Shown here in pieces: positions 1,363 to 45,917 of a DNA stretch of 64,000 nucleotides (position 1 is the first letter of the stretch; every line of letters begins with the position of its first letter). This DNA is from Monocercomonoides exilis PA203. Lineage: Eukaryota; Protista; Preaxostyla. The position numbers and the translations under genes are program-made. The notes under the pieces are model-generated. The model worked only from the letters and a program-made list of their open reading frames with translations, searched no databases and was not told the DNA's origin. The DNA lies in contig LSRY02000012.1 of NCBI GenBank assembly GCA_001643675.2, forward strand, positions 1,240,001 through 1,304,000, in the 5' to 3' direction.

Positions 1363-3576
1363 TTAGTCGACTTGTTCCATTTCACCTGGCTCAGCTGAAG
1401 CATCGGCTTCCAATGGTGGAAGGTCAGATGCATCTGATGAATCGCTTGTATCATCAATTGAAAGACCAAGCTTGATCATTCTGTGAATGCGAGAGGCAAA
1501 TGATGATGAATCTTCAAGTGAAAATCCAGATTGAAGCAATGCAGTTTCATAAAGCATCATGACAAGATCCTTCAATGTGGCATCTGCTGGGTTGTCGCAT
1601 TTCTTTCTCAATTCAGCCATGATTGGATGATCTGGATTGATTTCCATGATTTTCTTTGATGCCATGTATGAGAATGAAGAAGCATCACGCAATGCTTGAG
1701 CCTTCATGATTCTTTCCATGTTAGCAGACCAGCCGTATTCGTTGGTCACAAGAACACATGGTGAATCAACAACACGTGAGGAAATTGTGACTTTCTCGAC
1801 TTTTTCTCCGAGGATGTCCTTCATAACTTTGCACAAGTTTTCGTTGGCAGCTGCCATTTCCTCTCTTCTCTTTTTCTCTTCTTCTGTCTCTTCAATTTCC
1901 AATCCTTCTTTTGTAACGCAAACAAGTTTCTTTCCTTCGTAGTCCTTGAGTTGTTGAACAGAGTACTCATCGATTGGATCAACCATGAACAAAACTTCCA
2001 AGTCTTTTCTCTTCAATCTCTCCAAGAATGGGGAATCGCGGACAGCTTCCTTTGATTCTCCTGTAATGTAGTAAATGTTTTTCTGCTCTGGCTTCATTCT
2101 TGCAACATAGTCTTTCAATGAAATAAGCTCATCAGGAGATTTTGTTGAGCAGTATCTCAGCAATTCAGCCAATTTAGCTCTGTTGTCAGCATCTTCGTGA
2201 ATACCCAACTTAATGTTCTTGGAGAAGGCTTCATAGAATTTCTGATAGTCTTCCTTGTTCTCTGCAATATCATTGAACATTTCAATGCACTTCTTGACAA
2301 TGTTCTTCTTGATAACTTTCATGATCTTGTTTTGTTGGAGTGTTTCACGAGAAATGTTCAAAGGAAGATCTTCTGAATCAACGACACCACGAATAAAGCC
2401 AAGATATTCGGGAATCAAATCATCACAGTTCTCCATAATCAAGACACGGCGCACATACAACTTGATGTTGGTGTTCTTCTTCTTTGTTTCGAACATATCA
2501 AATGGAGCACGACGTGGAGTGAAGAGAACAGCTCGGAATTCCAATGATCCTTCGAAGAAGAAATGCTTGACAGCAAGATGATCTTCCCAATCGTTTGAGA
2601 TGCTCTTATAGAATGCTGCATATTCTTCTTTTGTGATTTCCTCTGGCTTGCGCATCCAAATTGCTTTCATCTTGTTGATTTGTTCATATTCATGAACAAC
2701 CTCCTTAATCTTTCTTGTTTTCTTTTCCTTTGGTTTTTGTTCTTCTTCAACTTTTGGTTCTTCATCGTCTTTCTTTTCTTCCTCACCTTCTTTCTTCTCT
2801 TCTTCTCCTTCCTTTTTCTCCTCTCCTTCTTTCTTTTCTTCCTCACCTTCCTTCTTTTCCTCTTCTTTCTTCTCTTCCTCCTCTTCTTCTTCCTCGACTT
2901 CCTTTTCCACTGTCTTTTCGACTTGGAGTGAAATTGGATATGCAATAAATTCTGAGTGTTTCTTGACAAGCTCCTTCAATTTTCTTTCTTCCAAGTAGTC
3001 CAACATATCGTCCTTCAAGAAAAGAGAAATACGAGTTCCACGAGGAATTCTTTCTCCTTCTTTGTCTTCGCGAATTGAAAATGAATCACCAGCAGCACTT
3101 TCCCAAACAAGTTGGACGTCATCGTGATGTTTTGTTGTCACCATCACATTCTGGGCAACAAGATATGCTGAGTAGAAACCGACACCAAACTGTCCGATCA
3201 TAGACACATCTGCACCAGCTTGGATGGCTTCCATGAATGCCTTTGTGCCAGAGCTTGCAATTGTACCCAAATTATTGACGAGATCAGATTCGGTCATACC
3301 AATACCAGTATCGCAAATGTGAAGGACTTTGTTGACCTTATCCGGAATAAGACGGATTTCAAATCTTGGCTCCTCTTCCAACAATGATTTATCTGTGAGG
3401 CTCTGATAACGAACTTTATCCAAAGCATCAGATGCATTTGAAATAAGTTCCCGAAGGAAAATATCCTTATTTGAATAGAATGTGTTGATGATCAAGCTCA
3501 ACAATTGGTTGATCTCTGCACGGAACTTGTAGTTCTTTGCATCAACGGGTACTTCAGGTTTTTCTTCAGTCGACAT
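1363..3576 (-). CDS. HSP90: Cytosolic heat shock protein 90, intronless
   Basis: [51 protein letters not shown], charged linker, C-terminal MEQVD. Confidence 0.99.
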
Positions 3577-3861
3577 TTATTTATTCAATGAAAATGATCA
3601 AGAATGACAGATCTGAAATTCCAACAATGCCACCAACCATATTATCTGTATTTGTTTTCCACTTTCGTTTTGGTTGTTTTTATAATATGCAAAAAATATT
3701 GATATATTGTTTTATAATTATTTGTTGTTAAATTATTGAAAATTAGTTAATCAAACCATACTTGTTGCATCAATTAACTGTTTCTTTTGTTATTTCACTC
3801 TATTTATTTTTCCAGAAATAGTTGGTCTCACATATCGGAATTGTAATTTTTTTGATTTATA
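3577..3861. promoter_or_regulatory. Probable bidirectional promoter between HSP90 and the TmcB-like gene
   Basis: 285-bp gap between the divergent ATGs at 3576 (-) and 3862 (+, inferred first exon). Confidence 0.45.
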
Positions 3862-6800
3862 ATGTCAAAGCTTGGAGATGATCATGCTGCATATGGTGGT
3901 TCTGGTGATGGAGAAATAATATCTGATAAACCGTCAAAATTTGACCATTTTATATTCTTCTCGTTGTATCCGCTTTACGATCAAGTATGAAGCTTTTTTC
4001 CTGAAACCTCAATAAGGTTATTTTTGTTTTATTGAAATATTGTTTCTTTTTTAAAAAATGTGAATATTACATCTCCTTGTTTCTAAATTCATATTCGATG
4101 ATAGACCCGAGACAATGAGCCTTTTTGGGTTGTTCTGTCGTGGATTTTTAGTACTTTACAACTGTTTGCAATCGCGATATGCGGCATCGACTTTAATGGG
4201 AATTCTGAAATAAATGCAGTTTGTGACTGTTGATTATAAATAACAATTGCATTTTTCATTTGCATTCTGAACATATCATTAAAGATTTTTGGATTTATGG
4301 ACTGGAGCTCTTTTATTGGGCTGATGCCTCTTGGATTTATTGTGTTTACAATTGTGGCATTTGCTCTTATTGTTTTATATTTCTTGATGATAGTTATAAT
4401 AGCAATTACTTTGAAGGTATTCAACATTTCCTTTTTTAAAATTAAAGCAATTATTCATTTTCTATAGAAATTTCTCGTTTCTTCACCGTGGATCAGAACA
4501 ATTTTTAGACATATTGATGCATTTTTCCATTCATTCTTGTATGCTTTAAAGAAAATTTTTAAAGTCTTAAATGAACATTGTTGTTTATGATTGCTGCTAC
4601 TGAAAACATTTAGGATGGTTCCGATACAATCTATTCTAATAACATCTGTTGACTGCGTGAACGGATCTTTAAGAGTTTTGCCATCGGAAACTTGTTGGTT
4701 TGTGTTATGCTATTCAGTTTCGTTTTTAATAACTTTCGTCTTTTTTTTTTTTTTTGGATTACATGCGAATGGTTGCTTTTTATGGTTAACAACTACTTTT
4801 TAGGGTATCAAGACATATCATCCTAACAGCATTTTCTTTGGTATTCTTCATCATCATCTCATTTGTTTCACTTGCACACGCGTATTTCATCGTACGTATT
4901 GATCCGAAGCACGGCGGCCTGAACTCGCACTTCAACGGGCTGTTTGCAGCTGTGTACTCGCTGTTCATCACAATGCAGATTCTTGTGATGCGGGTGACGA
5001 TGAGCGACAGAGGATGGAGGTCGATTCTGACCATCGTCCCAACCGTCGCCCTCATCATCGCCATCGCCGTGATGATGCCGTACTACCACTTCGTCCGCAA
5101 CGCCTGGCTCGTCGTCTCTTTGATCCTGTATGCCTTTGGCCGCCTCGCCTGCGAGCTCGGCTACTTCATGGGCGGAAACTCTGCCAACTACATCACCCTC
5201 TGGGCACTGATGATCTTCGCTGCTGTCGCCTGCTCTGTCGGTGTGGTTATCTTCATGCGGTGGCGGCTCAAGCGGCTGTACCTCCTCGCACCCGATGGCG
5301 AACCCCTGTTTGATCCTGCGGCAGACGACGTGGCGAAGCAGCTTCCGCAGTTCAAGTCGTCGATGCTCGTTGAGCTCGGCCTGCGGTTCCTGCAGAGCAA
5401 AAAATACAGAACACAAAAGCACCTCAACTTCGCAGACTTGGTGTATCGCCAGGCGCTGCGGAAGCAGCCGTCGAATCAGCTGCTTATTGCACAGTATTCC
5501 TTATTCACTCGTGTGTATAAGAAACACTATCTGAAGGCAGACAACCTGCTGAGGCGCAGTCGGGCCATGGGCTCATCTCTGTTCATCCGGTTTGTCACGT
5601 TCAGCCACTTCAAAAATGCTGCTGAAGAGAGCAACGGCGGAGAAATGAAGCGGGGCGATGGCGGTGTGTTGGACAGAGACGGTGGGGCAGAAGGTGTGCA
5701 TCAGAACAGGAGCAATGGTGGAATGGCATCGATGGCATCGAAAAGCTTGCTGGAGACAGCTGAGAAGCACCACCAGGATGCAATTATGTGGGTGAAGGAG
5801 TTCTGGAACAACCTCATGCGCCCCAAAATCAACTTTGAGGCGATCCCAGTGCTTTTGATCCGGCTGGTCAACAGCGAGAAGGCAGCGAGCCAGTGCTACG
5901 AGGAGCTGCTGGTGATGCACCCAAACAACGTGCAAGTGCTGCGCGGGTACGGCTCTCTTCTGCACGACATCTACCGCGACGAGGATGCTGCTGATGTGTA
6001 CTTCCAGCGGGCAGAGCAGATTGAGGAAGAGTCGTCGGAGTCTGTCACACGCACGATGGGCACTGGTGTTGTTGGGGCTGATCAGAAGTCGATGACACGC
6101 TCATTCCAAGGCAGCGAGTTCGGCTCGCGCGTGTCAGACAACTCGTCGCTGCAGCGGAACAACCGCAAGAAGAAGAAGAAGAAGGCGAACAAGCAGCTCC
6201 AGCTGCTCGACCAGATCCAGTCGAGCGAGAAAGCAGGTGGTGGGCAGAACAAAAGAGAACGCAACACGATTCCTTTCTACATTCCAATGCAATTGGGTTG
6301 CTATATGCTGGTGCTCGTGTGCATTCTGGTCGGCTACTTCGTCACAGGCAACCTTCTGAGGAAGTCGCTGGTGCAGTCAGGCAACATGCAGGAGATTGCC
6401 CTCGTCTCCACAAACATCGGCCAGCTCTGCCTTTACTCCAAGCTCTATCTCGCACGCTTTAGCGGTTTGTACCCCGCAGGCGATTTTCCTGCCTGGTTCC
6501 CGTCGATCCAGATGCTCAAGCAGAAGTTCGCGACGCTGAGCCAGGCGCTGATGAACCAGCTAGTGACTGTCTATGCAGACTCTTATTTTGAGCCGTGGGA
6601 GCTGCAGGATGCACTGCTTACGATGACGTCATACGACGATGCTGGCAATTTGAAGTCGAATTATACTGTCACCCGTGGATTGTTTGATGCTTATCGGTCA
6701 TTCGCATATGCTGCATATGATTTGGGCTCTGAGAATCTCCTTCCGAATGCAGTGTATGCGCGTCTGGCGAATGTCATCATCAACTTCCCCACAGTCATCC

Positions 6801-9800
6801 AGGAGTCTGTGAAGAGAGCAAGCCGGCAGTACAACACGATGCTCACCTCTGCGCTGAACACGACGAACATCATTGTGATCATTGTGGATCTTGTGATGTA
6901 CATCATCTGCGTGCTCCTGTCTGTGTTTGTGGTTATCCTCGCCTTCAGCAAGTCGAACACTGAGCGGCGCCGGGCACTGCACTTATTGCTGTCTGTGCCG
7001 AAGACATACATCCACCGCATCTCGATGTCGCTGATTGCATCAGAAAACGAGCAGACAGAGAAAGACAGGACGGAGCAAGGATCGCTGGTGGCTTCATTGG
7101 ATGCGATTATGGAGCCGATTGGGGTGACGCACGCGATGACTGACCGGATTAGTGGGGAAGTGACTGCAGATGCTGTTGAAGAGTACGATGCACAGAAGGA
7201 AGAGATGGAGTCGAAGACAGACAGAGAGAAGTGGGGCGAGGGCCATCTCGGAACATCGATGGGGCAGCCAGGAAAGGGGAGGCAGATGTCTGTGTCTGCG
7301 CTTCCAGCGCTGGATGAGAATCTGCCACAGCAGAATATGGAGCAGGTACAGCCGATGGTGCAGGTGACAATCCACCCACCGCAGATGGCTGGGGAGCATA
7401 CAGAAAGATTCGAGGAAAATGGGGCTTCATGCGAAGTGGAAGAGAAAGATGCAAAAGAAAGGCGCACTTCAGAGAACGACAAGATGATGATTTCGAAGCT
7501 GGAGACAACAATTTCTCCGAACAACTCTGTTAATTCTCCGACTCCTCTATCTCCTCCTCCGTCCAACCCTACTTCTCCCATGACATCCACCACTCCTATC
7601 ATCTCCCCAGCCTCTTCGTCTATCCAATCAGCTCCTTCTGTTAAGCCCTCGCCACAGCCGAAGAAAACAGCAGGAGCACAGAATGCCAATCAAGCAAAGA
7701 AGGACACTGCACCTTCGACTCAAAATGGAACTTCTGAACATAATTCAAAGAATGCAAAGGAAAATGAATCCAAAAAGATTGTTCCGCAGGCTGGGAATGG
7801 TTCTGGAACTGAGAGCAAAGGCAACAGCCCTCCTCCAGCAAATACAGCTGAGACTGACAAAAAACAAATGATTACTCAAATTAAACCACTTCAGATTCCT
7901 TCTGTTATTCCTACATCAAGTCCAATCCGCGGAACAGTCCAATCACAATCACTTCCACAGCTTATTCCCTTAATGCCAATGACCTATCAACAGCACGGTG
8001 GATTCACTTACGGTGCTCCTGGAGCATCACAGCAGCAGTTGCAAATGAAGGAGAATGGAGAAGCATGGGGGCCAATGACAAACAACGGGATTAATCTACC
8101 GGCAAATGCGCTGGCAATGCAAAGGAAAGCACAGTCATCGCAGTATCTGATGCAGCATCCGCTGGCACCGTCGCTTATGGGCACAGAACAAGTGGCACTT
8201 GGGCAGATCCAAGGAGAAGGTAGCGCAAACTTCAACAATTACATGAAAATGAATATGATGAACGGGACGAAGAGAAACAGCGATTTCACCGATCGCACAC
8301 CGTTTGGTCCTGGTGGTGTGTGGTCAGAAGAGGAGAGTGATGGGGTGTTTATGGGGAGACACAAACCGAAGGCTGACTTGAGGGATGCAAAGGTGCAGGA
8401 AATGATGAGGATGGGCAAGCGGAAGGGGAGAAGAGACGATTCTTCATCAGATTCAGAGTCAGACAGCTCTGATCGACATCAGCGCCGTCACCGCCACCAT
8501 CGCCATAAGAGCAGAAAGTACCCAGATCAGAAGCAAAATGGGGAATATGACAAGAAACATAGGGGAAAAGGCGGGAAAGAGACAGTCACTCAGCCTCCGC
8601 TGGTTCAACAGCAGCAACTTGCAGCACAGAACTTGGTGATTCAGCGAGCAGCAGAAGAGAGCGAGATTGATGCGCATCTGAACGGAGCTGTGCGGAACCA
8701 AATAGCAGACAACGAGTGGATGGAAGCTCTTGGTAAATCGATCGCGAAGACGGCAGAGTCGTACAAGAGGCTTCCCAGTGCGATTACGAAGAGCCTCATC
8801 ATTCGTACGTGCATTATGGTTGCAGTGCTGACAATTGTTGGTGTTGTGTTTTCCATTCTGCTTTTGACTTCGATGCACGATGTGAAGACGATCTCTGCCT
8901 CGCTGATGCTGGCTGGCTTCCGAGAGGTGCAGTTCTACCAGCTGGCTGTGTTTATCCAGATGCTTGCATTCTACAAGAGAGACATTCCGCTTGACCCGCA
9001 CTACGAGCTGAACAAGTCGCTGTGCACAAGCACTGTCCTCTGTGACTTCACTCATTTGTCGGGTGATGTGACAGCGCTCAAGAAATTGACTATGGATTCC
9101 CTTGCGATGTTCAAGGAAATCACCACCAGTGTGAATGCAGGGCGGAACGGCAAGACTGGATGGACAAATGACTCGAAGCTGGACTTGGCTACTGAAGAAT
9201 GCATTCCTGAGGTTTCATTCCTGCAAATATCTGATGGGAATTATAAGTGTCCATTTGAGAATTCTGCCCAGTGCTCAGATCCAGGGAGAATACAAAGCTA
9301 CACCAAATATGTGGGTTATGACATGTTATCTGCGCGTTTTGAGCGAAAGATGATGCAAATTGATATCACCACGTCGGTTGACGATCCTCTCGACATTTCA
9401 TCTGAGAACTACGGATTTGTCACCACAGCAACAATGAACGATATTGCAGCCATCTATCACGTGTACACAAAGGGCTATCAGAATGCATTCAGTTCTTCTG
9501 TGGAAACATTGCTATCAATCTCTGTGACTGCTCTTTCTGTTGAGATCGTTGTTCTTGTTGCGTGCTTCTTTGCATTTGTGATTCCTATCAAAATGTCTCT
9601 CACTTCAATAGAAAGATACACAATTCAGCTGAAAACGCTTATTCCAGACAATCTTACAGAGCATCTGGCGTTAACTCCTGAACAGCGCACGGGTGTCACT
9701 CAAATTGACTCTGGAAGAAAGAAGCTGTTTGAGGTGCTTACGCTTCTTTATGACGCTGTCATCTCATTCTCCTCAAAAAGCGAAATAAAAGCTCTTTCGG

Positions 9801-10141
9801 TGGAGTTGCTCCAACAGACTAAGACTCAGTTTTCTGCAGAGGAGAAGCTGATGCTTGAGTCGCAGTATGACACTGATGATTATGAAGCGCATAAGAAAGA
9901 TCATCTTCGAATCAGACAGAGAATAACATACTTGACTGATAATATAACTGCAGGGAGTGAGGTTGTAGCGTTCGGTTCGATAAACATTCTTGGAAATATT
10001 TTTGCTGAACATTTCAGCACATTAGACAAGACGTTCGGAGGGTTTTATGCGAAGGAGATGGGATTGACTCTGGATGACGGAGATTCTGATGATGATGATG
10101 ATGCTGCTGATAACATTGATGAAGCTGCTGCGATGATGTGA
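3862..10141 (+). CDS. TmcB/TmcC-like polytopic membrane protein with TPR-like region and C-terminal hemerythrin-like domain (~6 exons, ~1960 aa)
   Basis: Five short 5' exons (3862-3984, 4105-4218 and following) join by GT-AG into the 4838-10141 ORF. N-terminal multi-TM block (C..CW...H...P..G), TPR-like EELLVMHPNNVQVLRGYGSLL, two TM-loop-TM modules, and C-terminal TG..ID...F..EE.LM...H...H...H...D. Confidence 0.8.
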
Positions 10142-10663
10142 TATGTTCGTTGATAGGGAAATGATTTAATTTGTTGAATTCAACATCATTTCATTTTGTT
10201 GGTTTTCGTTTTATTTACTATGATAAAGCTGCACTTATAATATCTCTTGTGATTGGTAATTTTTTTATATGTTTGAGGAGATATCATTGTGTCATACGCT
10301 TTTCTAAGTAGTTTTATTTCTCATTTTTAGTTTCTGTCCTTTCATATTTTTTTTTTCATTATTTCATTTAAATCATTTTTAATTGTAACACCATATATGT
10401 ATTTTCTTTTTAAGATTGATTGTTTGTCCTATTTGTTATTTGATCCTAAAAATTAATCAGACTTTCCATTTTATGTATCATTTTCGTTGAGGCATCATTT
10501 TCATGTTATAAATATATGTTAGCATTTCTTGAATTTCTTGTTATTATTCTAAAATTGTCATTTCACATTAAATTTCCTTATTTAGTTTAAAATTATCTTA
10601 TTTTCCGTTTTCACACATTCATGAGTACATGTTATTTATAAGTTCTTGTCTTGTTTTTTATTG

Positions 10664-10693
10664 GTTTGTTTGTTTGTATGTTTGTTTGTTTGT
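10664..10693 (+). repeat. Short imperfect (GTTT)n microsatellite
   Basis: gtttgtttgtttgtatgtttgtttgtttgt. Confidence 0.8.
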
Positions 10694-11181
10694 AAACTTA
10701 TGTGTCAGCTTCTTACAGAGTAATGTCAAATGATTGCGTAATTTGACTTTATGATTCCGACAAACAATCCTTTCATGTTTTGTTTTCTTCTTATATGTAT
10801 TACAATTCATATGTAGCTTTCAAATGTGTTCAAAAATTCTCTTATAAAAATAATGATCATTGTTCAGCAACACTTAATAATTTTTTTAAAGAATCTTTTT
10901 TATTTTTCATTTCATACAAAACTAATTTTTTTTATTTGTTTATTATATTTTTTTCTCATGAAACTTTTTAATTTTTAATCAATTGATTTTATACAAATTT
11001 TTATGAAGAAAAGAGAAATGTTGAAAATTGATTATAATTTATCGGAGTTATCGTAAAAGTCTTTCTTTTTCGCAATAATAATGAAAAAACATAAAGATAT
11101 ATTTTTCTTCACAATTAAAATCAGAAGTGAAAATTTCGATTTATAATTTTATATACAAAAACACAAAAAGCAAATTTATTA

Positions 11182-14100
11182 TGATGTGTGCGAAAACCCG
11201 AACATTTGCAAAAACCCGCACTCTTTGGATTTTTGGAAACATCATAAAATTTTTTGTATTAAATTAAAGTCTTTTTTAATAAACACAAGAAATTATGAAC
11301 GAATTTTTAATAAGAATGAAAATGCATTTATAATAATGGGAGAAAATCCATATTTAATTCTCAAAAAGCCAAAAATATTGCAGAAATCAGTCAATTGAAA
11401 ATATCCAAATTTTTGAAATGCAAAAAGTGAAGACAGGAAATATGAATAATTCCAGAAAAGAACATTTTCGAAGAAACAGAGCATATAGAATGGAATCTCG
11501 CGGTGAGATATCTGGTATAAATGGAAGGCCACGATATTTGACAAAGGAAGAAGAAGAGAAGCTTGTTCAAATTATATTGAATTGGCACAATGTTTTGAAG
11601 CAGCCATCAATTTATGACATTCCTTTTTTAGTATGATTTTCTAATTTTGAAATTTTGAACTTTTTTTCCCAATCAAGGCAAGACAAATTCGAATCGAAAG
11701 ATCTCCGGCCTCTTCTGAATATATCGAAACACCGAGTTTAAGATGGGTTTACGATTTTTTATCAAGGCAAAAACAATTGCGCATAATAAATCCAGTTCGA
11801 CTTGATCATGCACGCTTGAGAGCATCGTTAAAAGAAAATATACAGTCTTTTCTTTCTCATTTGCGAACTTTGATGCTAAAGAAAAAATACCATCCTTCAT
11901 TAATATTACAATTGGACGAAACAAGTTGTCAGTCCAATTGTCGTCATCATAGGAAAAGAATTGCTAATGAAAAATGCAAATACTTGCCATGTTTAGAAAC
12001 ACCTCCTCTTCGTCATTTAACTCTTTTATTCATTGTGAGAGCTGATGGATATCATCTCCCCACCCATCTTCTTTTAAGTTCAAAATATGAAAAAGAAATA
12101 AACGAACAATGGAATGACGATTCGTTTGTATTGCATTCTACTCAAAAAGGATGGATGACAAAGGAACTGTTTGAAAAAATTATGTTAGAACATGATCTTC
12201 TTTTCATACAGAAGCAAAGAAAAATCGTGGAAAGAATTCGACAATATCAATATGAAATATGCCAAAGGAAATCTGGTGAATTGAAAACGAAAGAAAAAAG
12301 GTCAGAAAATTGCGAACAGAAAATGAAAAAGAATGAAACTGGTGAAAAAACAACACAACAAAATTTTCAAGACGCAGACGATCATGAATCAATAGTATTG
12401 CATTCATTAGCTGGATCAGAACTATTTCCAAGAGATAACTCAGATTCACCGACAAAATCCCCAAAATCCAAAGATCAGTGTGATAATGAAAAAAGTCACA
12501 AGGAATCCATTTCTTCTGACAAACTGGAACTTTCGAATACAATGTGTTCGGAAGGAGATCGAATTCAATCGTTGCAGCAACTGCTTCAATCCGCATCTGA
12601 CACTTCAAAAGAATTTTCAGAGTGTGAAAATTCTATTCGAATGAAAAAGAGTTTTCAAATTCCATCAGATGGATTTCCTAAAGTTGATGTTGGTGTAATT
12701 TCAAACTTTCATGATGAAACTCATTCAAATTGTTCTGATGAAGGAATATTTCTATTTGAAGAAGACGATAATAGAGATTGGTGGATAAAGAATGACGTTC
12801 ATCTGCCGAAAGCAAACTTATCGAAAAATGAAATAACTCAACATGAAAAAATATCTGAAGAAAAAACAAGCCATTCATTTCCTTCTGCTTTAATTATTCT
12901 TGATGGACATTCTTCAAGACAAAATATCCAGCTGTGGAAAAAGTTTTCTGAAGAAAACGTGGATGTCGTTGTGCTACCAGCACACACATCCCATATCCTT
13001 CAGCCACTTGATCTCGGACCTAATGCGGCACTCAAAAAGTAATTGAAAAATGTTCGAAATGAACCAAGTGTGAGCAAAATGAAAACAGAATTTTTACCTT
13101 TTGTCCAAGCCATCGCAGATTGCTCTTATTACGCGATGGCCCCAAGAGTAATACGGCATGGGTTCTACGAAGCTGGAATAACGTCTTCTCGAATATCCCA
13201 CGTACTGAGGCGCACTTTGGATTACTTACCTTTCGGCGTAAAACCGGCTAGACAGACGAACCGATGGTCCATCTCTGGTAAACTAATTACATCAACAGCA
13301 GTTCTGAAGGAATGGCAAGCTTTTGAAGAGAAAAACCCTATTTGTGATGATGAAAGAGTTGAGAATGTTCACATAACAAATATTAATCAAAAAACGATTA
13401 AAAATAAAAAGGAAAGACCTTCATCTTCAAAAATAACTTCTACTGATTCAAAGCTTTCAAACCTCACTTCAAACGAAAACACAAGAGAAGATACTGAGTC
13501 TGACGATAACTCATATTCAACAGATTTCGAATCAGATCCAACTGATTCACAAAAAGGGGAAGAAAATATTTTAATCGTTCATGTTTTCAGAAGAAAAAAC
13601 AAACAGAAAAGATTTATTGTGTGCCGGTCAGATCATTTGGATGAAGCAGATGGTCGAAAACAAGTTTCTGATTTGTCAAGTTCTTCTAATTATTCTGAAG
13701 AAGAATCTTCAGAAACTGATCATCATTCTGACAGCTTAAACAAATCGAAAGAAAAGAAAAAAAGAGATCTAGACAGCAGCGAATATATAGAAGAAGATCT
13801 TTCATCAAGCAACGAAGAAGAAGATTCGGATGGGAAAAAATTGCACAAAAAATATTCCATGAGATCAATGAAAGGTTTGCCCAAAATGTTATCCGAGCAA
13901 TATATTCTTTTTACGGATTCTGATGAAAGTAAAAATAATCCAAAGAAATGATTTGTGAGAAATAAACTATCGTGAAAAGTTGAAAAACATAACAAATCTT
14001 TTCAATCTCTTCATATCAAACAATTATCATTTAGGAAATCACTTTGCAATTTTATTGTCAAACATTTTGTTTATGGGGTTGTTTCCAACAATAAGTTTCA

Positions 14101-32953: not shown

Positions 32954-35900
32954 ATGAGTATTGCTTCTTACTTTAATAAGAAAAACTCTCAATCAAATTC
33001 AAACATTCAAACATATCATGCTCAACCTTCTTCCCCGGCCCAACTTCACAGCTCTGAAAAACATGACAATATGATTGAAAGTCGTTTTCAAAAGAGTCAA
33101 AATTCAAATCAGTTTGAAATTTAATTTTGAAAATAAAAATTCCTTTTTGTTGTGAACTTTAATATTTTATTTTGCCTTTTCTTTCAGAGGTTTTTACAAA
33201 AGTGATTCTTATCAACGTAATTACCAAGCATCTTCAGCTCCTCTTCCACAAAAAACACCACAACAAACTTATTCAACTTCCTTCAATTCTTCGACTCCTC
33301 CTCCAACTGCTAAAAAACCTTTCTATTCTTCATCACCACAATCTTCATCAAGACCATCTTATTCTTCAGGAATGCCCATGCCTAGTTCTTCTTGGAAACA
33401 ATCACATCAACAACAATATCAGCGCTCAAATCAATATTACAAAGGCTATAATCAACAAAGAAATTTTTCTTCAACATCTTCACAATCTTTATATAGTCCT
33501 TCGTTTTCACAAATAGATTTTAGTCTTATAACTCGAAATTCTTTCAGCGCAAAGTGCAATCCGATTTGCGACGCAGTTATGAATATTTTTAAAAGAATAC
33601 CAGGAAGACATTATGATGGAGAAATGCGCGAATGGATTTTCCCTCTTTCTCAACATGATAATCTTTCAGCAATTCTTTGCTCAGAATATTATAAATCAAA
33701 ATCTCCATCATCAGGCTATGCCATCAACAAGCTGAACGTATTACCAAAATCTGTACTAAGGGTATTTAGCAAGTACATGACATGCACAGAGGAGAACCCT
33801 CAGCCCCCGCCTTTAGTCGCCACACCAAGCGAAGTCAGGCTAATGGACCGAATGCCTCTTGCATTGCGTTCTGCTTTATTCCCATTTCAGGAAGAAGGCG
33901 TGCTGTTTCTCCTGCGGCGTGAGGGGCGTGGGATGATTGGAGACGAAATGGGGCTGGGAAAGACTCTGCAAGCGCTGGCTGTAGCGTCGGTGTATCACAA
34001 CGAGTGGCCGCTGCTTGTGATCTGCCCATCGACGCTGCGGTTTCAGTGGTCAGAGGCGATTGAGAAGTGGTGTGCACCGTTTGTGGACGAAGGCGGAGTG
34101 AAAGTGATTATGAGTCAGATGGATGAAGTAACGGGAAAAGAATCAGCGGTTGTGATTTCGTACCAGATGTGTGTGAATCAGATCTCGAGCATTGTGAAGG
34201 CTCGCTTCGGAGTGATCATTGCCGATGAATCGCACCAGCTGAAGAACGGGAAATCACAGCGGGCGAAAGTGATTCTGCCGCTCATTCAGACAACGAAGCG
34301 TGCAGTGATGCTGACAGGGACACCCGCCATCAACCGGCCGGTTGAGCTGTTTTCGCAGATCAGCTGCCTGCGGAGGGACCTGTTCCCGACGATGGCGGAG
34401 TTTGGGCGGCGCTACTGCGAGATGAAGCAGATGCCACGGTGGGTGGACTACTCAGGAGCAACAAACTTGAAGGAGCTGCACCTGCTGCTGGAAGAGACAG
34501 TGATGATCAGGAGGCTGAAGAAGAATGTGCTCACACAGCTGCCGAAGAAGAGCAGAGTTGCAATCTACTTAAACATTGGGGAGAATAAGATGAAGGAGCT
34601 GAAGGAGGCTGTGAAGGAGGCAACAGAAGCAGCCACAGCGCGAAAGAGGGAAATTGTGCAATCCTTAAATCTATCGTCAGGGTTATCGTCATCATCTGCA
34701 TCATCCTCGTTTGGCTCAGGCGGCTTTGGCCAATCAGACAAAAGCGACGACATTGCAGACGCCAACACGATTATCAAGCAGTATCAGCTGACTGGCAAAG
34801 CGAAGCTGGATGCGGTGTGCGAGTATCTGCACGACCAGCTGGAGAAGAAGGAGAAGTTTCTTGTGTTTGCGCATCATCGCATTGTGATGGACGGGATCTG
34901 CCAGATTTTTGAGAGCAACGACGACTACATCCGCATCGATGGAGACACTCCCGCTGCTGATCGGCACATGTATGTGCGCTATTTCCAAGAGGAGGAGCGC
35001 TGCAAAGCGGCTGTGCTGTCACTGAAGGCAGCGTCGACAGGGCTGACGCTAACGGAGGCGTCGCGGGTGATCTTTGCAGAGCTCAGCTGGACGCCCGGGG
35101 TGCTTGTGCAGGCAGAGGACAGAGTGCACAGAATTGGCCAGTTCAATCCGGTGTGTGTGACGTACCTGCTGGCTAAGGGCACAGTCGACGAGGCAATTTG
35201 GGCGATGATCCAGAAGAAGCTGGAGGTGATTGGCGATGCACTGAACGGCAACAAGATCCGGCTGCAGGCATCGACTGAGGAAAGAGTGGTGAATATGCAG
35301 CGGCTGAGGATGCTGCAAGGGAAGAAGGCGCTGATGATGATTGGACGTGGGGAGATGCTGGATGACAACATGGAGCTGTTCAATGAAGGTGTGGATGGAG
35401 GAGATTTCGATGCGGGAAGCCAACTCAGAGACAAGTCACAGTCGCAAATTGTCGATTTTTTCAAGCCAGTTTTTGATGTGCCAGATCCGAACAAAGTGGA
35501 AGGAGCAGAGAAGTTCTTTGAAGACGAGTTGGAACAGCGGCTGATGAGCGAAGATATGGCGTCTGTGCAGAACGAGGGGCTGAAAGGGAAGAATTCTTCT
35601 TTTGCTTCATTCCCTTCATCATCATCTTCATCGTTGTCATCTTCATCTTCTTCTCGTTCGAACATACAAAGCTCAAGCATGTTTGGAGGGCACGTGGAAA
35701 CAGACGTCACACGCGAGGGTGAGCCTGTTCGTATCACTCATTTCTCGCCTAATTCACTCAGAACAAGCACATCCTCTGCTTCTGGCTTTGGATCTTCCTC
35801 TAAAACGGGCACTGACTCACTGCAAAGTAATCTTCCTGTGAAAAGGCAGGACGGAACGATTGATCCGATGGATATTGATGCGACGTTTGGGATGGGCTGC

Positions 35901-36485
35901 TTTGCAGACGGAGACGAATTCGAGCCGCTTGATCCGAAAGAGGAGCTGAAGGATGTGAAGGACAGCAAAGGAGGAGAATTCGGCTTTGATCAGAACGAAA
36001 GTGTGATGATCGTTGAGGACAATAGCATTGCTGATTTGACAAACGAAGAAGCTTTTCAGAATCCGAAAATTAGCGAATTAGAAATAGAAGGAAATAGCAA
36101 AGATGAACAAAAGAATGAAGACAAAGAAGAACCCACAGCAACAAAGCCAGAACAAATGTCACCTGCACCAAAAAGAAAGTTTCATGATTTGATGGAAATA
36201 TACGAAAATGAAGGAGAGGAGGAAGATGATTCAAATGTTAATGAAACCAAAATAGAAGTTATTGAAGACAACGAAAGGGAAAACAACTTTGGAAATTTGG
36301 AACAGTATGGGAAATCACGGAAACTATCGAGCGAGGAAATAGCTAGGCAATTTGCTGATATTCACGATAATATTTCGAGTGATGAGATGAAACTTCCAGA
36401 GTTCACAATAAATACCGGTTTTTCAGATGTTCCATTTCCAATTGATGACGTTGTCGAGGGACCAGACAACGATGAATGGACATGA
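32954..36485 (+). CDS. SMARCAL1: SMARCAL1/HARP-type SNF2 annealing helicase, 2 exons
   Basis: HARP-like segment (IFKRIPGRHYDGEMREWIFPL), DEMGLGKT, DESH, LTGTP, RIDG, QAEDRVHRIGQ. Confidence 0.9.
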
Positions 36486-40046: not shown

Positions 40047-43000
40047 ATGGATCAAAAAGAACAAACTGGTTTGTAACAATTAGGAAAGATAATTTTATGA
40101 TATTACGATGAAATTTTGTAATAATTATTCGAGAAATTATTGAAGAGATAAATATTTTTATTTTGCAAAAACCTCATCTTTTTTATTCATTTATCAAATT
40201 ATCAATTTGTATTTTGTATTTGACATAAACGTTTTATAATAGATGAGACAAAAGAAGAGTTTATGATCCAAACAGAAAACTGTAAGGCACAGCTGCAATA
40301 CGAGCTTTCATCTGCGTTGCTTCTTCAAAAAGACTTTCAGCGTGTTTTCTTTGCGAAAGATGAAGAACTCACAAAACTTAGAAAAGAACTTGAAGACCTA
40401 AAAGCAAATTATAATTCTCTACAAGAGTCATGCGATGCTGCGAGAAAATCAGCGGAAGAAATGAAACAGGAAAAAGAAAATGTTGAGATTCTTCTCTCTG
40501 CAACCAAGAATGAACTTCAACAAACAAAGGAGAATTCAAACTTAGAAATAAATAACTTGCAACAAAAATGCCAAACGATTGAACAACAAAGAGTTCAAGA
40601 AAATGATGAATCAAATCAAAAGATTATAAAACTTTCTGAAGAATTGGAAAAGGCAAGTCAAACAGCTTCAAAAGCACTTGAAGTCAACAGAGAATTAACG
40701 TCAATGACAATGCGTTTCGAACAGGAAAAATCAGAATATCTTTCGCAGCTTAATATCCTCACTGGGTCAAACGAAGATCTTACACGCAGAATTTCTGAAC
40801 TGGGAAATGCCCTCAGCGCAGCAAATGAAACGATCATGAAACTGAAAGGAGAATCTTTGGAACTTGCTGAGAAGCTAAAGAAAGAAGAGAGCCGTTCTGT
40901 GTGTGCTGAAAATGAGTTGGAGAAACAAAGATTCCAACAATCTGAGCTTTCTTCAGCAGCGTCAACTTCAAACGGCAATATCTCAAGCAATGAAACATTG
41001 CAGAGCACAATTATGAGCCAACTGCACGAAGCAGAGCTGAAGAACCAGCAGCTGCGTTCTGAGCTAAATGTGATGAAGTTGCAGATGGACAAGCTTGCTG
41101 AGGAAAACACTCAACGAAACAATGAACTGACAACTGTGAAGAGCGAGTGTGAGCAGCTGGGGCAGCAAAAGACAGCGCTGGAGGTGCAGCTGACTGAGGC
41201 GTCGCAGGTGATCCATGTGTTGAAGGAGGAGAAGCTGGAGAATGCAGGGCGAGAAAAGCTGCTGCAGAAGCAGATTGAGAAGGCGGTTGAGATTGTGTCG
41301 GCTTCTGTGAATGCAAATGCATCAGTCGATAACAACAACAATAATAATAATGCTGAATCAAATTCTGAAGGCAAAGAGAATCAGATGGAGGCTGAGTCTT
41401 CACAGGGCAGCAAAGATAATGAAAGTGCATCATCTTCAATTTCACAGGATAACAATGCTGAAAACTCAGAACTGACAAGTGAAGCAAGTCTCTCTGAATC
41501 AGCTTCAGAGAAAAGTGGCCATTCAACATTGCTTCCTCCACAATATCGCTCTCTTGCTGCACTGACAGCAGAACACATCCGTCTTTCAGCTGCTGTGGAG
41601 TTGCTGTTGGACAAAGAGAAAGTAGGCCAAGAAGAGAATAAAACTGACTCATCTGATTCATTCCAGAGGCAGAGTCTGTTGGAAGCTGAAGAGCAGGTGA
41701 AGAAGCTGGAGAGGTGTGTTGAGTCGTGGAAGAAAGTGGGCACGACAAATGCCTCACTGAACAACCACCTGCGGAGGGAGATTGAAACACTGCGGCAGAA
41801 GATTACCTGTTTGGAGGAAGAGAGAGAAAAAAGAAACGAAGCTGCTGCTGCCCAGCAAGCCTTCCTCAGCCAGTACGAAAAGCATCTTATCTCTTCTATT
41901 ACACCTCCTTCATCATCTTCTTCATCATCAGCCTCCTCTTCTTCCTCTTCTTCTTCTTCTCTCTTCACCGGGCTGACCATCGCCACAACAGAGCCCTCGG
42001 AGCTGTTTGACCGCCCGCTCCGCTCGGCTGATCTGCGCCACGCGCTGATGGCACATCCTTCCCCATTCACATCACATCAATCAACTCAACAATTAACCAC
42101 ATCATCTCTTATTCCTCCGCTTTCATCAACAGTTTCACCATCATCCTCATCATCATCCTCTCCTTCACCTTCACAACTCTTGCAGAAGGGCAAATCTCCC
42201 GACACACAATTACATTCCCAACAATATCAACATCAACAGCATCAACAACAGCTCAGCATCGCCTCTGCAATCATCGTTGATCTGCAGCGTCGGCTGAGTG
42301 AAGTGCACCAGATCCACACGAGCACCATTGGCCAGCTGAATCAGCAGGTGGCGTCGCAGCAGCAGACGATTGCGCTGTTCAAGCAGAAGAACCAGCTGTT
42401 GGAGCTGCACACGCAGACGATGGCGACAGAAATGGCGCATCTGAAGGAATCGCTCCAGGAGCAGAACAAACAGGCAGCGGCAGAGTCGTCCTATGCGAGT
42501 CACTTGCTTTCTCTTTTGGAGAGATACGAAGCAATGATCGAGTCTAAAGCGCAGATGCTGCGGCAGATTGACCTGTTCTTCAGCAGAGAGAAGAGGGAGA
42601 AGAGGAAAGCGCAGCTGGAGAGGGACGCGGAGAGGAGGAAGAGAGAGAAGCGAGAGAAAGATTCACAGACACTTAGGCTGATCTACGATACGCTTGTTGA
42701 GTCTGCTAAATTGCAGAGGCCGTCGTCGAAGATGGGAAAGGGAGTGCATTTGATGTTGCCAGAAGAGAATGAGACTGCGAAAGAGGATATCAATGTGCAG
42801 GAAGGAGAAGGAGAAGGAGGAGAAGGAGGAGAAAGAGAGGAGGAAGGAGAAGAGATTGAGGGATTGCCACAAAAGACGAAGAGAAAGAGAGAAGGGAAAT
42901 CTGCGCAGATGCCAATCAAACAGAAAGGTAAAAGAGGAAGAGGAGGTAAAAAACAGAGATTTGTAACGGAATTAATAGAAACACCAGCTGAAGGAGAAGA

Positions 43001-45917
43001 AAAGGGAGACAAAACTGCAGCAGCAGAAGAAGAGGAAGAACAAGGAGGTAAAAGCGATCACGGAACTGCTTCAGAAACTCAACAAAAGCCAACAGGAACG
43101 GAGAAATCTGAGCTAATTTCTCCGCTTACATTATCTGTTGATGCGCTTATATCAGCCAGACACGCCTCGCTGCTGGCAAAAGTGGAAGAGCTGACGAAGT
43201 CTCTTAAGGATGCCACACAAAAAGCAGAAGAAGCGGCTGAAAAGCAACAAGAACTGAAAATTGAAATGGAGGAGCTAACAAAAGCGAAAGATGGGCTGCA
43301 GAAGACGATGGAGGAAGAAAAGCAGGTGTTTGAGAAGGAGAAAGAAGAAATGGCGAAGCAAGTTGAGGACAAGACTCAGGAACTGAAGCGGCTGCAGGCA
43401 GAATTTGACAGTGTGATCAAGGAAGGAGGGATGTCACAGACGGTGGATGCGCTGAGGGAGTCAATAAGAGAGAAAGAAGAAGAGAAGCTGCAGTTAACAT
43501 TGCACTATGCAGAGGAGAAGGCAGAGATGGAGAAGAGCTTTGCGGAGGAGAAAGGGCAGATGGCGCAGCAGATGGCAGAGAAGATGGAGGAGACGAGGAA
43601 AGAATGTGAAGAGAAAACAGGGCTGCTGATGAAGCAGATTGAAGAGCTGCAGAAGGAGCTGGCGGAGACGGCAGAGAAGCTGAGCAAAGTGGAGGAAGAG
43701 CTGCGAGAGGCGAAGACAGAAAAGGAGAAAGTGTTCTCGACATTGACACACACAACAGCCCAGGTGGATGAAGAGAAAGAGCAGAAGGACATGTTTCTGA
43801 ATGAGATTCGCCTGCTGAAGGAGAACTTTGCAGCGGCACAGGGAAGAATCCAGGAAATGGCTGCAGAGCACGAGGCTAAAGTGAAAGAGGATGAAGCGCG
43901 TCTGACAGAAATGAGCACAGTTGTGGAGTCATTGAATGGAGATATCAAGCAGAAGGAGGAGGAAGCGATGAAGCTGAGACAGGAAATAGAGACACTGAAC
44001 AGCAAGCTGAGTGATGCAGTGGCATGTCAAAAAGATGAGATGAGGCAGCATGGAATGACATTGCGCAGATTGGAAGAGGCAGAACAGGAGAGAAACAGGT
44101 TGGAAGGAGAAGTGGAAGAGATGAAGAGGAGAATGACGTTGCAGAAGAAGGAAGCAGAAGAAGGCAGTGGAGAGATGCAAGAAAAGCAGATTGACATGAT
44201 GAAGCAAGTGGAAAAGGAGAATGCGCAGAAGATTGAGCAGCAGGAGAAGAAGTTGGCTGAGCTGACGAGTGCGTTGGAAGACAAGGAGAAAGAGTGTGTG
44301 AGATGGAAGCAGTTGGCATTTAGCCAGACAAAAGCGCCTTTGGCAGTCAAACAAAGGAGTCAGAAAGAAGATGGATCAGATGAACACGAAGAAGAAAGAA
44401 AAGAAGAAGAAGAAGAAGAAGAGAAAGTTTCAGAATCATCTTCAATTCCTGAGCCATTGCATTCGAAGTCTTCAACACTTCTGCCTATCTTGATGTCACA
44501 GATAGATGCGATGGAGTCTCAACTCTCTCTTTTGAAGATGGAAAACCAGCGTCTCTCGTCTGCGCTGGAACTTCGTTCACAGCAAGTGCCACAGCCGCTG
44601 CGGACGGATGCACAAATAGCAGCAGCACAAAATGCACAATTGACACAGATGGGATCAGTTTCCAAAGTAAATGCTTATTCTTCTTCTTCTTCTTCTTCTT
44701 CTTCTGAAAGTGATTTGGAGAGAATTCAGCTTTTGAGCGAGTCCAACAAGACGCTCCGCAGCGACAAGCAGAATTTGGAGAAGAAGCTTATTTCAACTGA
44801 AAGGAAGCTGAATGAAATGGAGAAAGAGATGCAGAAGATGCAAAATGAACTGACAATTTACAAAAAAAGTGCAGAAGAAGCGGCTGTGCTTCGTGTGCGT
44901 GTGGAAGAGCTGACCAAGAAAATCAGTGCGCTCAGCGGAGAATTGGAAGAGATGGGGAAGAAACTGGGAAGGAAAGAGCTGGAGCTGAAGGAAAAGGAGT
45001 TTGAGAGGATGAACGAGAGGAAGCAGAAGGAGAAGGAGAAAAGATTGAGAGAGGAGGAGAAAGGGAAGTTTGAGGCAGAACGGAAAGAAAGAGAAGAAAA
45101 ACTGAGAGAAAGTGAAGCGAATGCAGGAGAGCTGCAAAAAACGCTGAGTGCGAAAGAGGCAGAGCTGAAAAGGTTGAATGAAACGAAGTTGAACTACGAA
45201 GAGGAGCTTGCTAACAAAAATGAAGTTATCAGAAAGAAAGAGGCAGAGCTGGCAGAAGCGATGAAGAAAATGGAGGCAGCTGAAAAAGAACTGAAAGTTC
45301 TGACAGCTTCTTCTCAGCAGCACGGCGAAAGCATCCAAAAACATGAGGCAGAGAAAGCGAGCTATGAAAAGACGATACAAGAGCTTAATGCACAGTTGAG
45401 TATGCTGAAGGAAGAGAAAGAGAAAATCGAAGGAGTGGAGAAGCGGAGAAACGGAGAATTAGCAGAAGCGCAGGGGAAGCTGGCACGAGCCTCGGAGCTT
45501 CTGCAGAGGATGACGCAGACAGCGAAGAGGACGACGGAGTTTGTGAGCAATCTGGTGAAGAGCCAGACGGAAGAGAAGGCGCTGAACAAAGTGCTGGTGG
45601 CAAAGATAAAGAGGATGGAGGCGAAGAGAGAAGCAGCGAATGCCGCAGGAAATACAACACAAAAACAAAATACAGAAGAAAAGACGGAAAAAACAGCAGA
45701 TTTGAATTCTGAGAAAAATGAGGGAGAAGCAGCGGGAAAGCAAAGTGGTATGAAAAATGTAGGAGTTGCTGATTTGCATCATGATGAGAAGAGTAACGCT
45801 ATGGAATCTGATGAGATACCAAACACATCTAACGAACAGACAATTGCACCAAATTTACCACAATCTGCTTCGTTGGATTCTGAAGTTCATCAAAAGGATG
45901 CAGAAGAAAGATCCTAA
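40047..45917 (+). CDS. Long coiled-coil protein, probable nuclear basket TPR/Mlp1 homolog, 2 exons
   Basis: ~1890 aa, heptad-rich. ERIQLLSESNKTLRSDKQNLEKKL resembles the TPR/Mlp LNLLRESN..LR.E motif. A short first exon starts at 40047. Confidence 0.6.

Follow-up and report, generated by a model that had tools for sequence, protein, structure and literature searches.

To our knowledge, the hemerythrins studied so far, whether carriers or sensors, all work through two irons, and the locus described here raises the question of what a hemerythrin may do when the ligands of exactly one of them are lost. The locus is MONOS_6502, a gene of Monocercomonoides exilis PA203, a mitochondrion-free gut protist. 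It lies in a stretch of 64,000 nucleotides (GenBank assembly GCA_001643675.2, contig LSRY02000012.1, positions 1,240,001 to 1,304,000 of the forward strand) that was analysed as a whole and is called the window, and to which the positions below refer unless a contig is named. In a canonical hemerythrin, Fe1 is held by three histidines and Fe2 by two, a glutamate and an aspartate bridge the metals, and O2 binds end-on at Fe2 (PMC9388753). An initial annotation of the window claimed that the C-terminal tail of MONOS_6502 is a hemerythrin lacking just the two Fe2 histidines, that this pattern is too selective for random decay and suggests a repurposed mononuclear Fe or Zn site or a redox-sensing site, and that the carrier is a receptor-like membrane protein of a probable anaerobe. 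Analysis of the tail together with its paralogs and relatives shows that this altered site is an old, conserved state in which an arginine occupies the place of the first lost ligand.

Fold and metal ligands of the C-terminal domain

Sequence profiles and structural modelling together identify the last 145-170 residues of MONOS_6502 as a genuine, if so far predicted, hemerythrin four-helix bundle. The tail belongs to NCBIfam TIGR02481, with 62.9 bits against a cutoff of 51.75 over model positions 7-123 of 126. The 24.7 bits obtained with Pfam PF01814 fall just short of its cutoff of 25.3, which is why public annotation shows the TPR_TmcB domain only, and the bacteriohemerythrin subfamily NF033749 is not reached (61.4 bits, cutoff 84). 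A profile of 29 paralog tails, compared with the Protein Data Bank (PDB), matched the hemerythrin of Methylococcus capsulatus (McHr; E 2e-12), DcrH-Hr (6e-10) and myohemerythrin (8e-6). McHr (PDB 4xpx, 4xpw), which is soluble, consists of one domain and has its di-iron site intact, is the closest solved relative in sequence (single-sequence E 7e-4), and its alignment to the tail is colinear over the whole domain.

The AlphaFold2 (AF2) model of the domain has a mean predicted local distance difference test (pLDDT) of 91.1 and a predicted template modelling score of 0.85. With VIA-align all 14 top solved matches of this model were hemerythrins (Z 15.0-17.2), and unrelated four-helix bundles reached at most 12.9. 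The best match was DcrH-Hr of Desulfovibrio vulgaris (PDB 2avk, 2awc), with Z 17.2 and a root-mean-square deviation (rmsd) of 1.9 Å over 132 residues; a longer model gave Z 18.1, and across the two models the rmsd was 1.8-1.9 Å over 132-133 residues. Foldseek returned no E-value below 0.001, its top 14 rows being hemerythrins with TM scores of 0.6-0.86.

The ligands were mapped by a HMMER alignment of the tail to the solved bacteriohemerythrin 4xpw and by a family-profile alignment, and their roles were taken from the published motif (PMC9388753). Five of the seven are present, namely the bridging Glu1854 and Asp1916 and the Fe1 ligands His1871, His1875 and His1911, and the first two histidines are replaced by Arg1813 and Gln1850 (Table 1), so that the tail does not carry the full set. 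We refer to this state as the half-site. The alignment thereby bears out the arginine and glutamine that the initial annotation had placed at the His25 and His54 positions, with the other five ligands kept. Its assignment of ligands to Fe1 and Fe2 agrees with the same review, and the peptide that it quoted lies where it had been placed on the forward strand, its TGV motif starting at 9689 and its last ligand codon ending at 10027. The four-helix fold that it had assumed is likewise what the TIGR02481 score, the AF2 confidence and the DcrH-Hr match indicate. In bacterial hemerythrin sensors the ligands are fully conserved save in one group of ATPases (PMC9388753).

Paralogs, relatives and phylogeny

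A profile search of the M. exilis genome (82.3 Mb, 101 contigs) gave 53 matches, which correspond to about 49 hemerythrin tails, all on TmcB-type genes and nearly all terminating open frames 1200-3800 codons long. Read over the seven ligand columns, at least 31 of these tails are R-x-E-H-H-H-D, three are H-x-E-H-H-H-D, 8-11 have the intact H-H-E-H-H-H-D and a few are broken or partial. The nearest paralog of MONOS_6502 is 51% identical to it. Two tail copies, G000:C47:219023-219430 and G000:C25:860540-860818, contain an in-frame TAG, the latter additionally having Gln at the third Fe1 histidine; both are likely decaying paralogs.

Half-site tails 27-53% identical to those of M. exilis were recovered from Blattamonas nauphoetae, Streblomastix strix and metagenome contigs in a search of 1.84 billion representatives, and none of its best 150 matches from outside the oxymonads joined a half-site tail to a TmcB carrier. 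Long proteins with tandem intact hemerythrins were considered as TmcB relatives and discarded, being bacterial signalling proteins of SBP-PAS-GAF-SpoIIE type. A maximum-likelihood tree built from 78 domains groups the 60 half-site rows in a single clade (100/99) with a long stem and places the intact oxymonad tails in a separate one. Within the half-site clade MONOS_6502 branches close to the base, its subclade of seven rows (84/93) also holding the M. exilis tails L002 and L003, one Blattamonas protein, one Streblomastix protein, which carries the same Arg and Gln pair, and two metagenome contigs. MONOS_6502 shows all four traits of the clade: the first Fe2 position is Arg, the second is not His, the H-x-x-x-H pair is followed by Arg-Gln-Arg, and the linker has the form L-x-x-L-(L/I)-P. 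Because the clade and this subclade mix three genera, the tree places the half-site state before the split of Monocercomonoides, Blattamonas and Streblomastix. Although one among many paralogs, MONOS_6502 is by this phylogeny a member of a basal subclade in which all three genera are represented. The three M. exilis tails with His at the first position (L005-L007) were considered as ancestral intermediates and rejected as such; since they are nested among Arg-bearing copies, their histidine is a regain.

Some individual proteins depart from these patterns. Blattamonas nauphoetae KAK2960695.1 (3353 amino acids) has an internal hemerythrin (H-Q-E-H-H-H-D, residues 1485-1628) in addition to a C-terminal half-site domain, and may be a tandem receptor or two fused gene models. 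KAK2958320.1 of the same species, within the half-site clade, reads R-H-E-H-H-H-D, with His at the second position and the Arg kept at the first; its sister has Gln at the second position, one base change away. In bacteria, one domain of the tandem hemerythrin NOX08786.1, from a gammaproteobacterial metagenome-assembled genome (MAG), has Ser and Gln in place of the Fe2 histidines with the other five ligands kept, and one domain of MBD3218447.1, from a Zixibacteria MAG, has Asn and Ile there and Ala for the bridging Asp; the partner domains are intact in both proteins. Since bacterial tandem hemerythrins thus also include domains without both Fe2 histidines, the loss is recurrent and has arisen independently in these uncharacterised domains.

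Conservation of the half-site

Conservation was scored over the 60 half-site domains and 144 profile columns. The bridging Glu is kept in 98% of the domains, the three Fe1 histidines in 100, 100 and 98%, and the bridging Asp in 100%. Fifteen of the 144 columns are conserved at 95% or above and include all five kept ligands (hypergeometric probability 6e-6). Because the Fe1 and bridging ligands are invariant across three genera while the Fe2 histidines are gone, we regard the loss as selective and as the product of selection, as the initial annotation had argued, and not as random decay. Decay of the tail in a dispensable or dying gene copy could draw on the many paralogs in the genome and on the few broken ones, such as the TAG-bearing copies on contigs C47 and C25. 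It is contradicted both by this conservation, the same pattern with all five remaining ligands being found in three genera, and by the open frame of 1953 codons and full-length spliced transcripts of MONOS_6502, and we consider it extremely improbable.

At the first Fe2 position, 95% of the 60 half-site domains have Arg, and His is found there in 10 of 10 intact-type oxymonad domains and in 91% of the bacterial domains compared. The second position is most often Val in the half-site clade (45%), with Gln, Tyr, Thr, Ala, Ile, Glu and Ser also occurring. Gln1850 was considered as a replacement ligand and rejected, because its column varies freely among relatives. The conserved replacement is the Arg at the first position, and not Gln1850. 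The conservation expected for the R/Q pair and the H-H-H-E-D set therefore held for the arginine and the five ligands, and failed for the glutamine.

The second position also bears on the alternative of a two-metal site, in which the bridging carboxylates and solvent, with Gln1850 or nearby Glu residues, would hold a second, more labile iron, as in a labile-iron sensor resembling FBXL5 or BRUTUS. Potential ligands (Gln, Glu and Tyr) do occur at this position in the subclade of MONOS_6502, Glu1855, the neighbour of the bridging Glu, is 97% conserved, and one iron of the YtfE centre is naturally the more labile (PMC9268430). However, most members of the clade, among them the closest paralog L002, have Val, Ala, Ile or Thr there, and the Arg at the first position is unable to act as an iron ligand and brings a charge that would oppose a second cation. 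We consider a two-metal site quite unlikely.

Outside the ligands, the half-site domains share an Arg-Gln-Arg motif 4-6 residues past the second Fe1 histidine (R 92%, Q 100%, R 98%), where intact oxymonad paralogs mostly have L-R-K, and a conserved Phe after the third Fe1 histidine. Their L-x-x-L-(L/I)-P linker motif (L1 100%, L4 91%, P6 93%) lies at a fixed distance from the membrane helix and is absent from the intact-site oxymonad paralogs compared. The arginines in particular allow for a metal-free pseudo-hemerythrin, in which Arg1813, perhaps together with Arg1879, would form buried salt bridges with Glu1854 and Asp1916, the histidines would serve in hydrogen bonding or pH sensing, and the bundle would be structural, dimerising or partner-binding. 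Consistent with this, an Arg replaces a metal ligand in nearly the whole clade, a second clade-specific Arg lies one turn past His1875, both could neutralise the carboxylates without a metal, and the tail scores below the PF01814 cutoff. Nevertheless, the classic metal set of three His, one Glu and one Asp is invariant among domains that are otherwise 24-50% identical, and salt bridges by themselves seldom require all three histidines; the metal-free bundle seems to us unlikely.

Membrane architecture of the carrier protein

MONOS_6502 is a membrane protein of TmcB/TmcC type: it contains PF25474 and is a large multi-pass protein with 11-12 hydrophobic segments by hydropathy, and in the Atlas it lies closest to clusters of TmcB/TmcC proteins from Preaxostyla and Parabasalia. 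The hydropathy profile begins with an N-terminal block of seven clear hydrophobic segments and one marginal segment, followed by the TPR domain in the cytosol, a membrane helix and a further helix separated by a loop of about 180 residues, and a disordered loop of 620 residues rich in Ser, Pro and Gln. After these come a helix, a loop of 222 residues, the last membrane helix and the hemerythrin tail. In the AF2 model of the last 452 residues one unbroken helix runs from the outer loop through the last membrane segment towards the hemerythrin bundle. Hydropathy and positive-inside counts, with three Lys/Arg residues just past the last membrane helix, put the tail on the cytosolic side, immediately behind this helix. 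The claim of a tail on a receptor-like membrane protein in an anaerobe thus finds its counterpart in a multi-pass TmcB-type protein of M. exilis.

The second outer loop has two invariant cysteines, Cys1657 and Cys1665 (Cys179 and Cys187 in alignment A2). In a wide structural search it resembled the sensor bundles of NarQ, McpN and Adeh_2942 with Z of about 10, below the noise line for helical proteins; it was accordingly not accepted as a proven sensor bundle, and the match was kept as a resemblance only. For the same reason, receptor-like is a fair description of MONOS_6502 and not a demonstrated membership. The protein is not a bacterial hemerythrin sensor of the DcrH, Bhr-DGC or Bhr-HD-GYP type, Pfam finding no fused MCP, GGDEF or HD-GYP domain in its 1767-residue frame. 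Within the disordered cytosolic loop, at 8390-8540 on the forward strand (residues ~1385-1425), a Ser/Asp run adjoins a His/Arg-rich run, H-Q-R-R-H-R-H-H-R-H, and this patch could be a site of phosphorylation or metal binding. At its C-terminus the Streblomastix relative ends in an acidic stretch, as MONOS_6502 does.

Among known systems, DcrH, the best structural match, is also an anaerobe's membrane receptor in which two membrane helices flank an outer loop and a cytosolic hemerythrin forms the C-terminus. Its set of seven ligands is complete, however, it binds two irons and O2, and HAMP and MCP domains stand between its membrane and hemerythrin parts (PMC9388753). In MONOS_6502, by contrast, both Fe2 histidines are gone and the hemerythrin follows the membrane helix directly, with no recognisable output domain. 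P1B-5 ATPases are likewise multi-pass membrane proteins with a cytosolic hemerythrin-like end, non-canonical ligands and an unsettled sensing role; unlike MONOS_6502, their motif, H-HxxxE-HxE-HxxxxD, is still di-iron and their carrier is a known pump (PMC9388753). The intact-site oxymonad tails (for example L030, L032 and L033) share the TmcB-type carrier and the C-terminal position, but have H-H-E-H-H-H-D, lack both Arg-Gln-Arg and L-x-x-L-L-P, and belong to the separate clade. FBXL5 and BRUTUS/BTSL2 are eukaryotic hemerythrin-like bundles that report iron or redox state and are not O2 carriers, and BTSL2 has one subdomain without a metal centre (PMC12022348); in contrast to MONOS_6502 they are soluble E3 ligase components with di-iron working domains and belong to the broader HHE group rather than to the hemerythrins of O2-binding type.

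Proposed working of the half-site tail

With moderate confidence, we favour the view that the half-site tail is a one-metal, metal- or redox-responsive regulatory module with an arginine in the lost Fe2 pocket. One metal ion, most likely iron, would be held at the Fe1-type site of three histidines and two carboxylates, and the guanidinium of the Arg, which starts where the Fe2 ligand points, would fill the emptied pocket and balance its charge. Since the O2-binding iron is gone, the tail would not carry O2 reversibly. Instead, the packing of the bundle would depend on metal occupancy or oxidation state and, transmitted to the last membrane helix by the rigid conserved linker, would determine how the inner face of the receptor signals; the influence could also run the other way. 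A hemerythrin-like bundle can indeed hold one iron: the E159L mutant of YtfE (RIC) crystallises with a single iron in its site after the loss of a ligand (PMC9268430), although this is an engineered, destabilised bacterial protein and not a natural conserved state.

Several points weigh against this view. The remaining iron of YtfE E159L is weakly bound (PMC9268430), and the half-site may therefore bind metal poorly. The contact of Arg1813 with Glu1854 and Asp1916 is suggested by position alone, and what is known of the clade comes from sequences and from the predicted fold of MONOS_6502. As for the carrier, the receptor view of the outer loop draws on weak structural matches (Z ~10), and Pfam recognises TPR_TmcB alone in the 1767-residue frame and no output domain.

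The one-metal module could be taken further, to a one-iron sensor in which the metal, next to a pocket lined by two clade-specific arginines, binds a small anion or gas such as NO, sulfide, peroxide or a carboxylate, the receptor family of at least 31 copies then being the organism's main membrane reading of redox state, iron or gut chemistry. We think it rather improbable that the proposal extends this far.

Gene structure, expression and genomic surroundings

A word-index protein search identified the product of the gene with an uncharacterised NCBI protein of 1953 amino acids, MONOS_6502, to which it is identical; the same search with the tail alone returned no other protein. The gene has five short introns, with GT..AG ends at the mapped junctions of all but the fourth, where the donor is the exception, and the single open frame that holds the hemerythrin tail spans 4838-10141 on the forward strand (1767 codons). 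Logan contigs from the runs ERR12411804, ERR12411574 and ERR12411199 contain the uninterrupted frame of 1953 codons with all five introns removed, at 99-100% identity. Because such intron-free, full-length contigs occur in three runs, MONOS_6502 is transcribed and spliced as annotated, tail included. The coordinates of the gene and its features are collected in Table 1.

Table 1. Coordinates of MONOS_6502 and its features in the window.
Feature	Position	Strand	Basis or remark
MONOS_6502 transcribed span	3771..10960	+	Spliced Logan contigs; 5' ends 3771-3776; 3' untranslated region to at least 10960
MONOS_6502 gene	3862..10141	+	Six exons; TGA stop 10139-10141; exact residue mapping of the NCBI protein
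MONOS_6502 exons	3862-3984, 4105-4218, 4285-4416, 4468-4539, 4615-4698, 4805-10141	+	Residue mapping
TPR_TmcB domain, cytosolic	5720..6040	+	Pfam PF25474, E 5e-22, 78.5 bits against a cutoff of 27
Transmembrane helix preceding the second outer loop, residues 1511-1529	8810..8866	+	Kyte-Doolittle peak 2.99; four K/R in the preceding 15 residues
Second outer loop, residues 1530-1751, predicted helical bundle	8867..9532	+	AF2 model of the last 452 residues, pLDDT 83
Last transmembrane helix, residues 1752-1770	9533..9589	+	Kyte-Doolittle peak 2.67; three K/R directly after
Juxtamembrane linker with L-x-x-L-(L/I)-P motif	9590..9646	+	Conserved in half-site domains
Predicted hemerythrin-fold domain, residues 1784-1928	9629..10063	+	TIGR02481, family profile, AF2, structure matches
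Arg1813 (AGA)	9716-9718	+	Aligns to 4xpw His22; first Fe2 histidine position
Gln1850 (CAG)	9827-9829	+	Aligns to 4xpw His58; second Fe2 histidine position
Glu1854	9839-9841	+	Aligns to 4xpw Glu62; bridging carboxylate
His1871	9890-9892	+	Aligns to 4xpw His77; Fe1 ligand, H-x-x-x-H pair (9890..9904)
His1875	9902-9904	+	Aligns to 4xpw His81; Fe1 ligand, H-x-x-x-H pair (9890..9904)
Arg-Gln-Arg motif, residues 1879-1881, clade-specific	9914..9922	+	Comparison of half-site and intact domains
His1911	10010-10012	+	Aligns to 4xpw His117; third Fe1 histidine
Asp1916	10025-10027	+	Aligns to 4xpw Asp122; bridging carboxylate
Acidic C-terminal tail, poly-Asp, ending D-E-A-A-A-M-M	10064..10138	+	Common to the two closest paralogs, L002 and L003

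Upstream, a cytosolic Hsp90 gene (PF00183, E 5e-227) at 1363-3576 on the reverse strand stands head-to-head with MONOS_6502, with about 195 bases between its start codon and the 5' end of the MONOS_6502 transcript. In the AT-rich DNA downstream, at 11777-13951 on the forward strand, a DDE_1 transposase-like frame (PF03184, E 2e-11) is followed by a stop and a second frame of 302 codons, a region that resembles a broken-frame element of pogo/Tigger type. Farther along, 33372-36485 on the forward strand encodes a SNF2-family helicase with a HARP motif, similar to SMARCAL1. Purine-skewed DNA contains two very long open frames, both on the forward strand, at 40263-45917 (1884 codons, with no Pfam match) and 51328-59445 (2705 codons).

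Significance

The genome paper of M. exilis names hemerythrin solely among the laterally acquired genes for oxygen stress, with no mention of a fusion to a receptor or of an altered site (PMC6759080). A literature search that covered TmcB, the hemerythrins of oxymonads, and hemerythrins that are mononuclear or degenerate turned up no description of either feature. In the half-site tail exactly the histidines of the O2-binding iron are lacking, in a form that occurs in nature, is strongly conserved and predominates within a large receptor family. Such a domain, small and soluble, is easily expressed, and the intact-site paralogs of the same genome are built-in controls. If one metal is bound, the half-site would offer a natural means of telling apart the contributions of the two halves of the di-iron centre, and the family would be a candidate means for oxymonads to sense iron, redox state or oxygen exposure.

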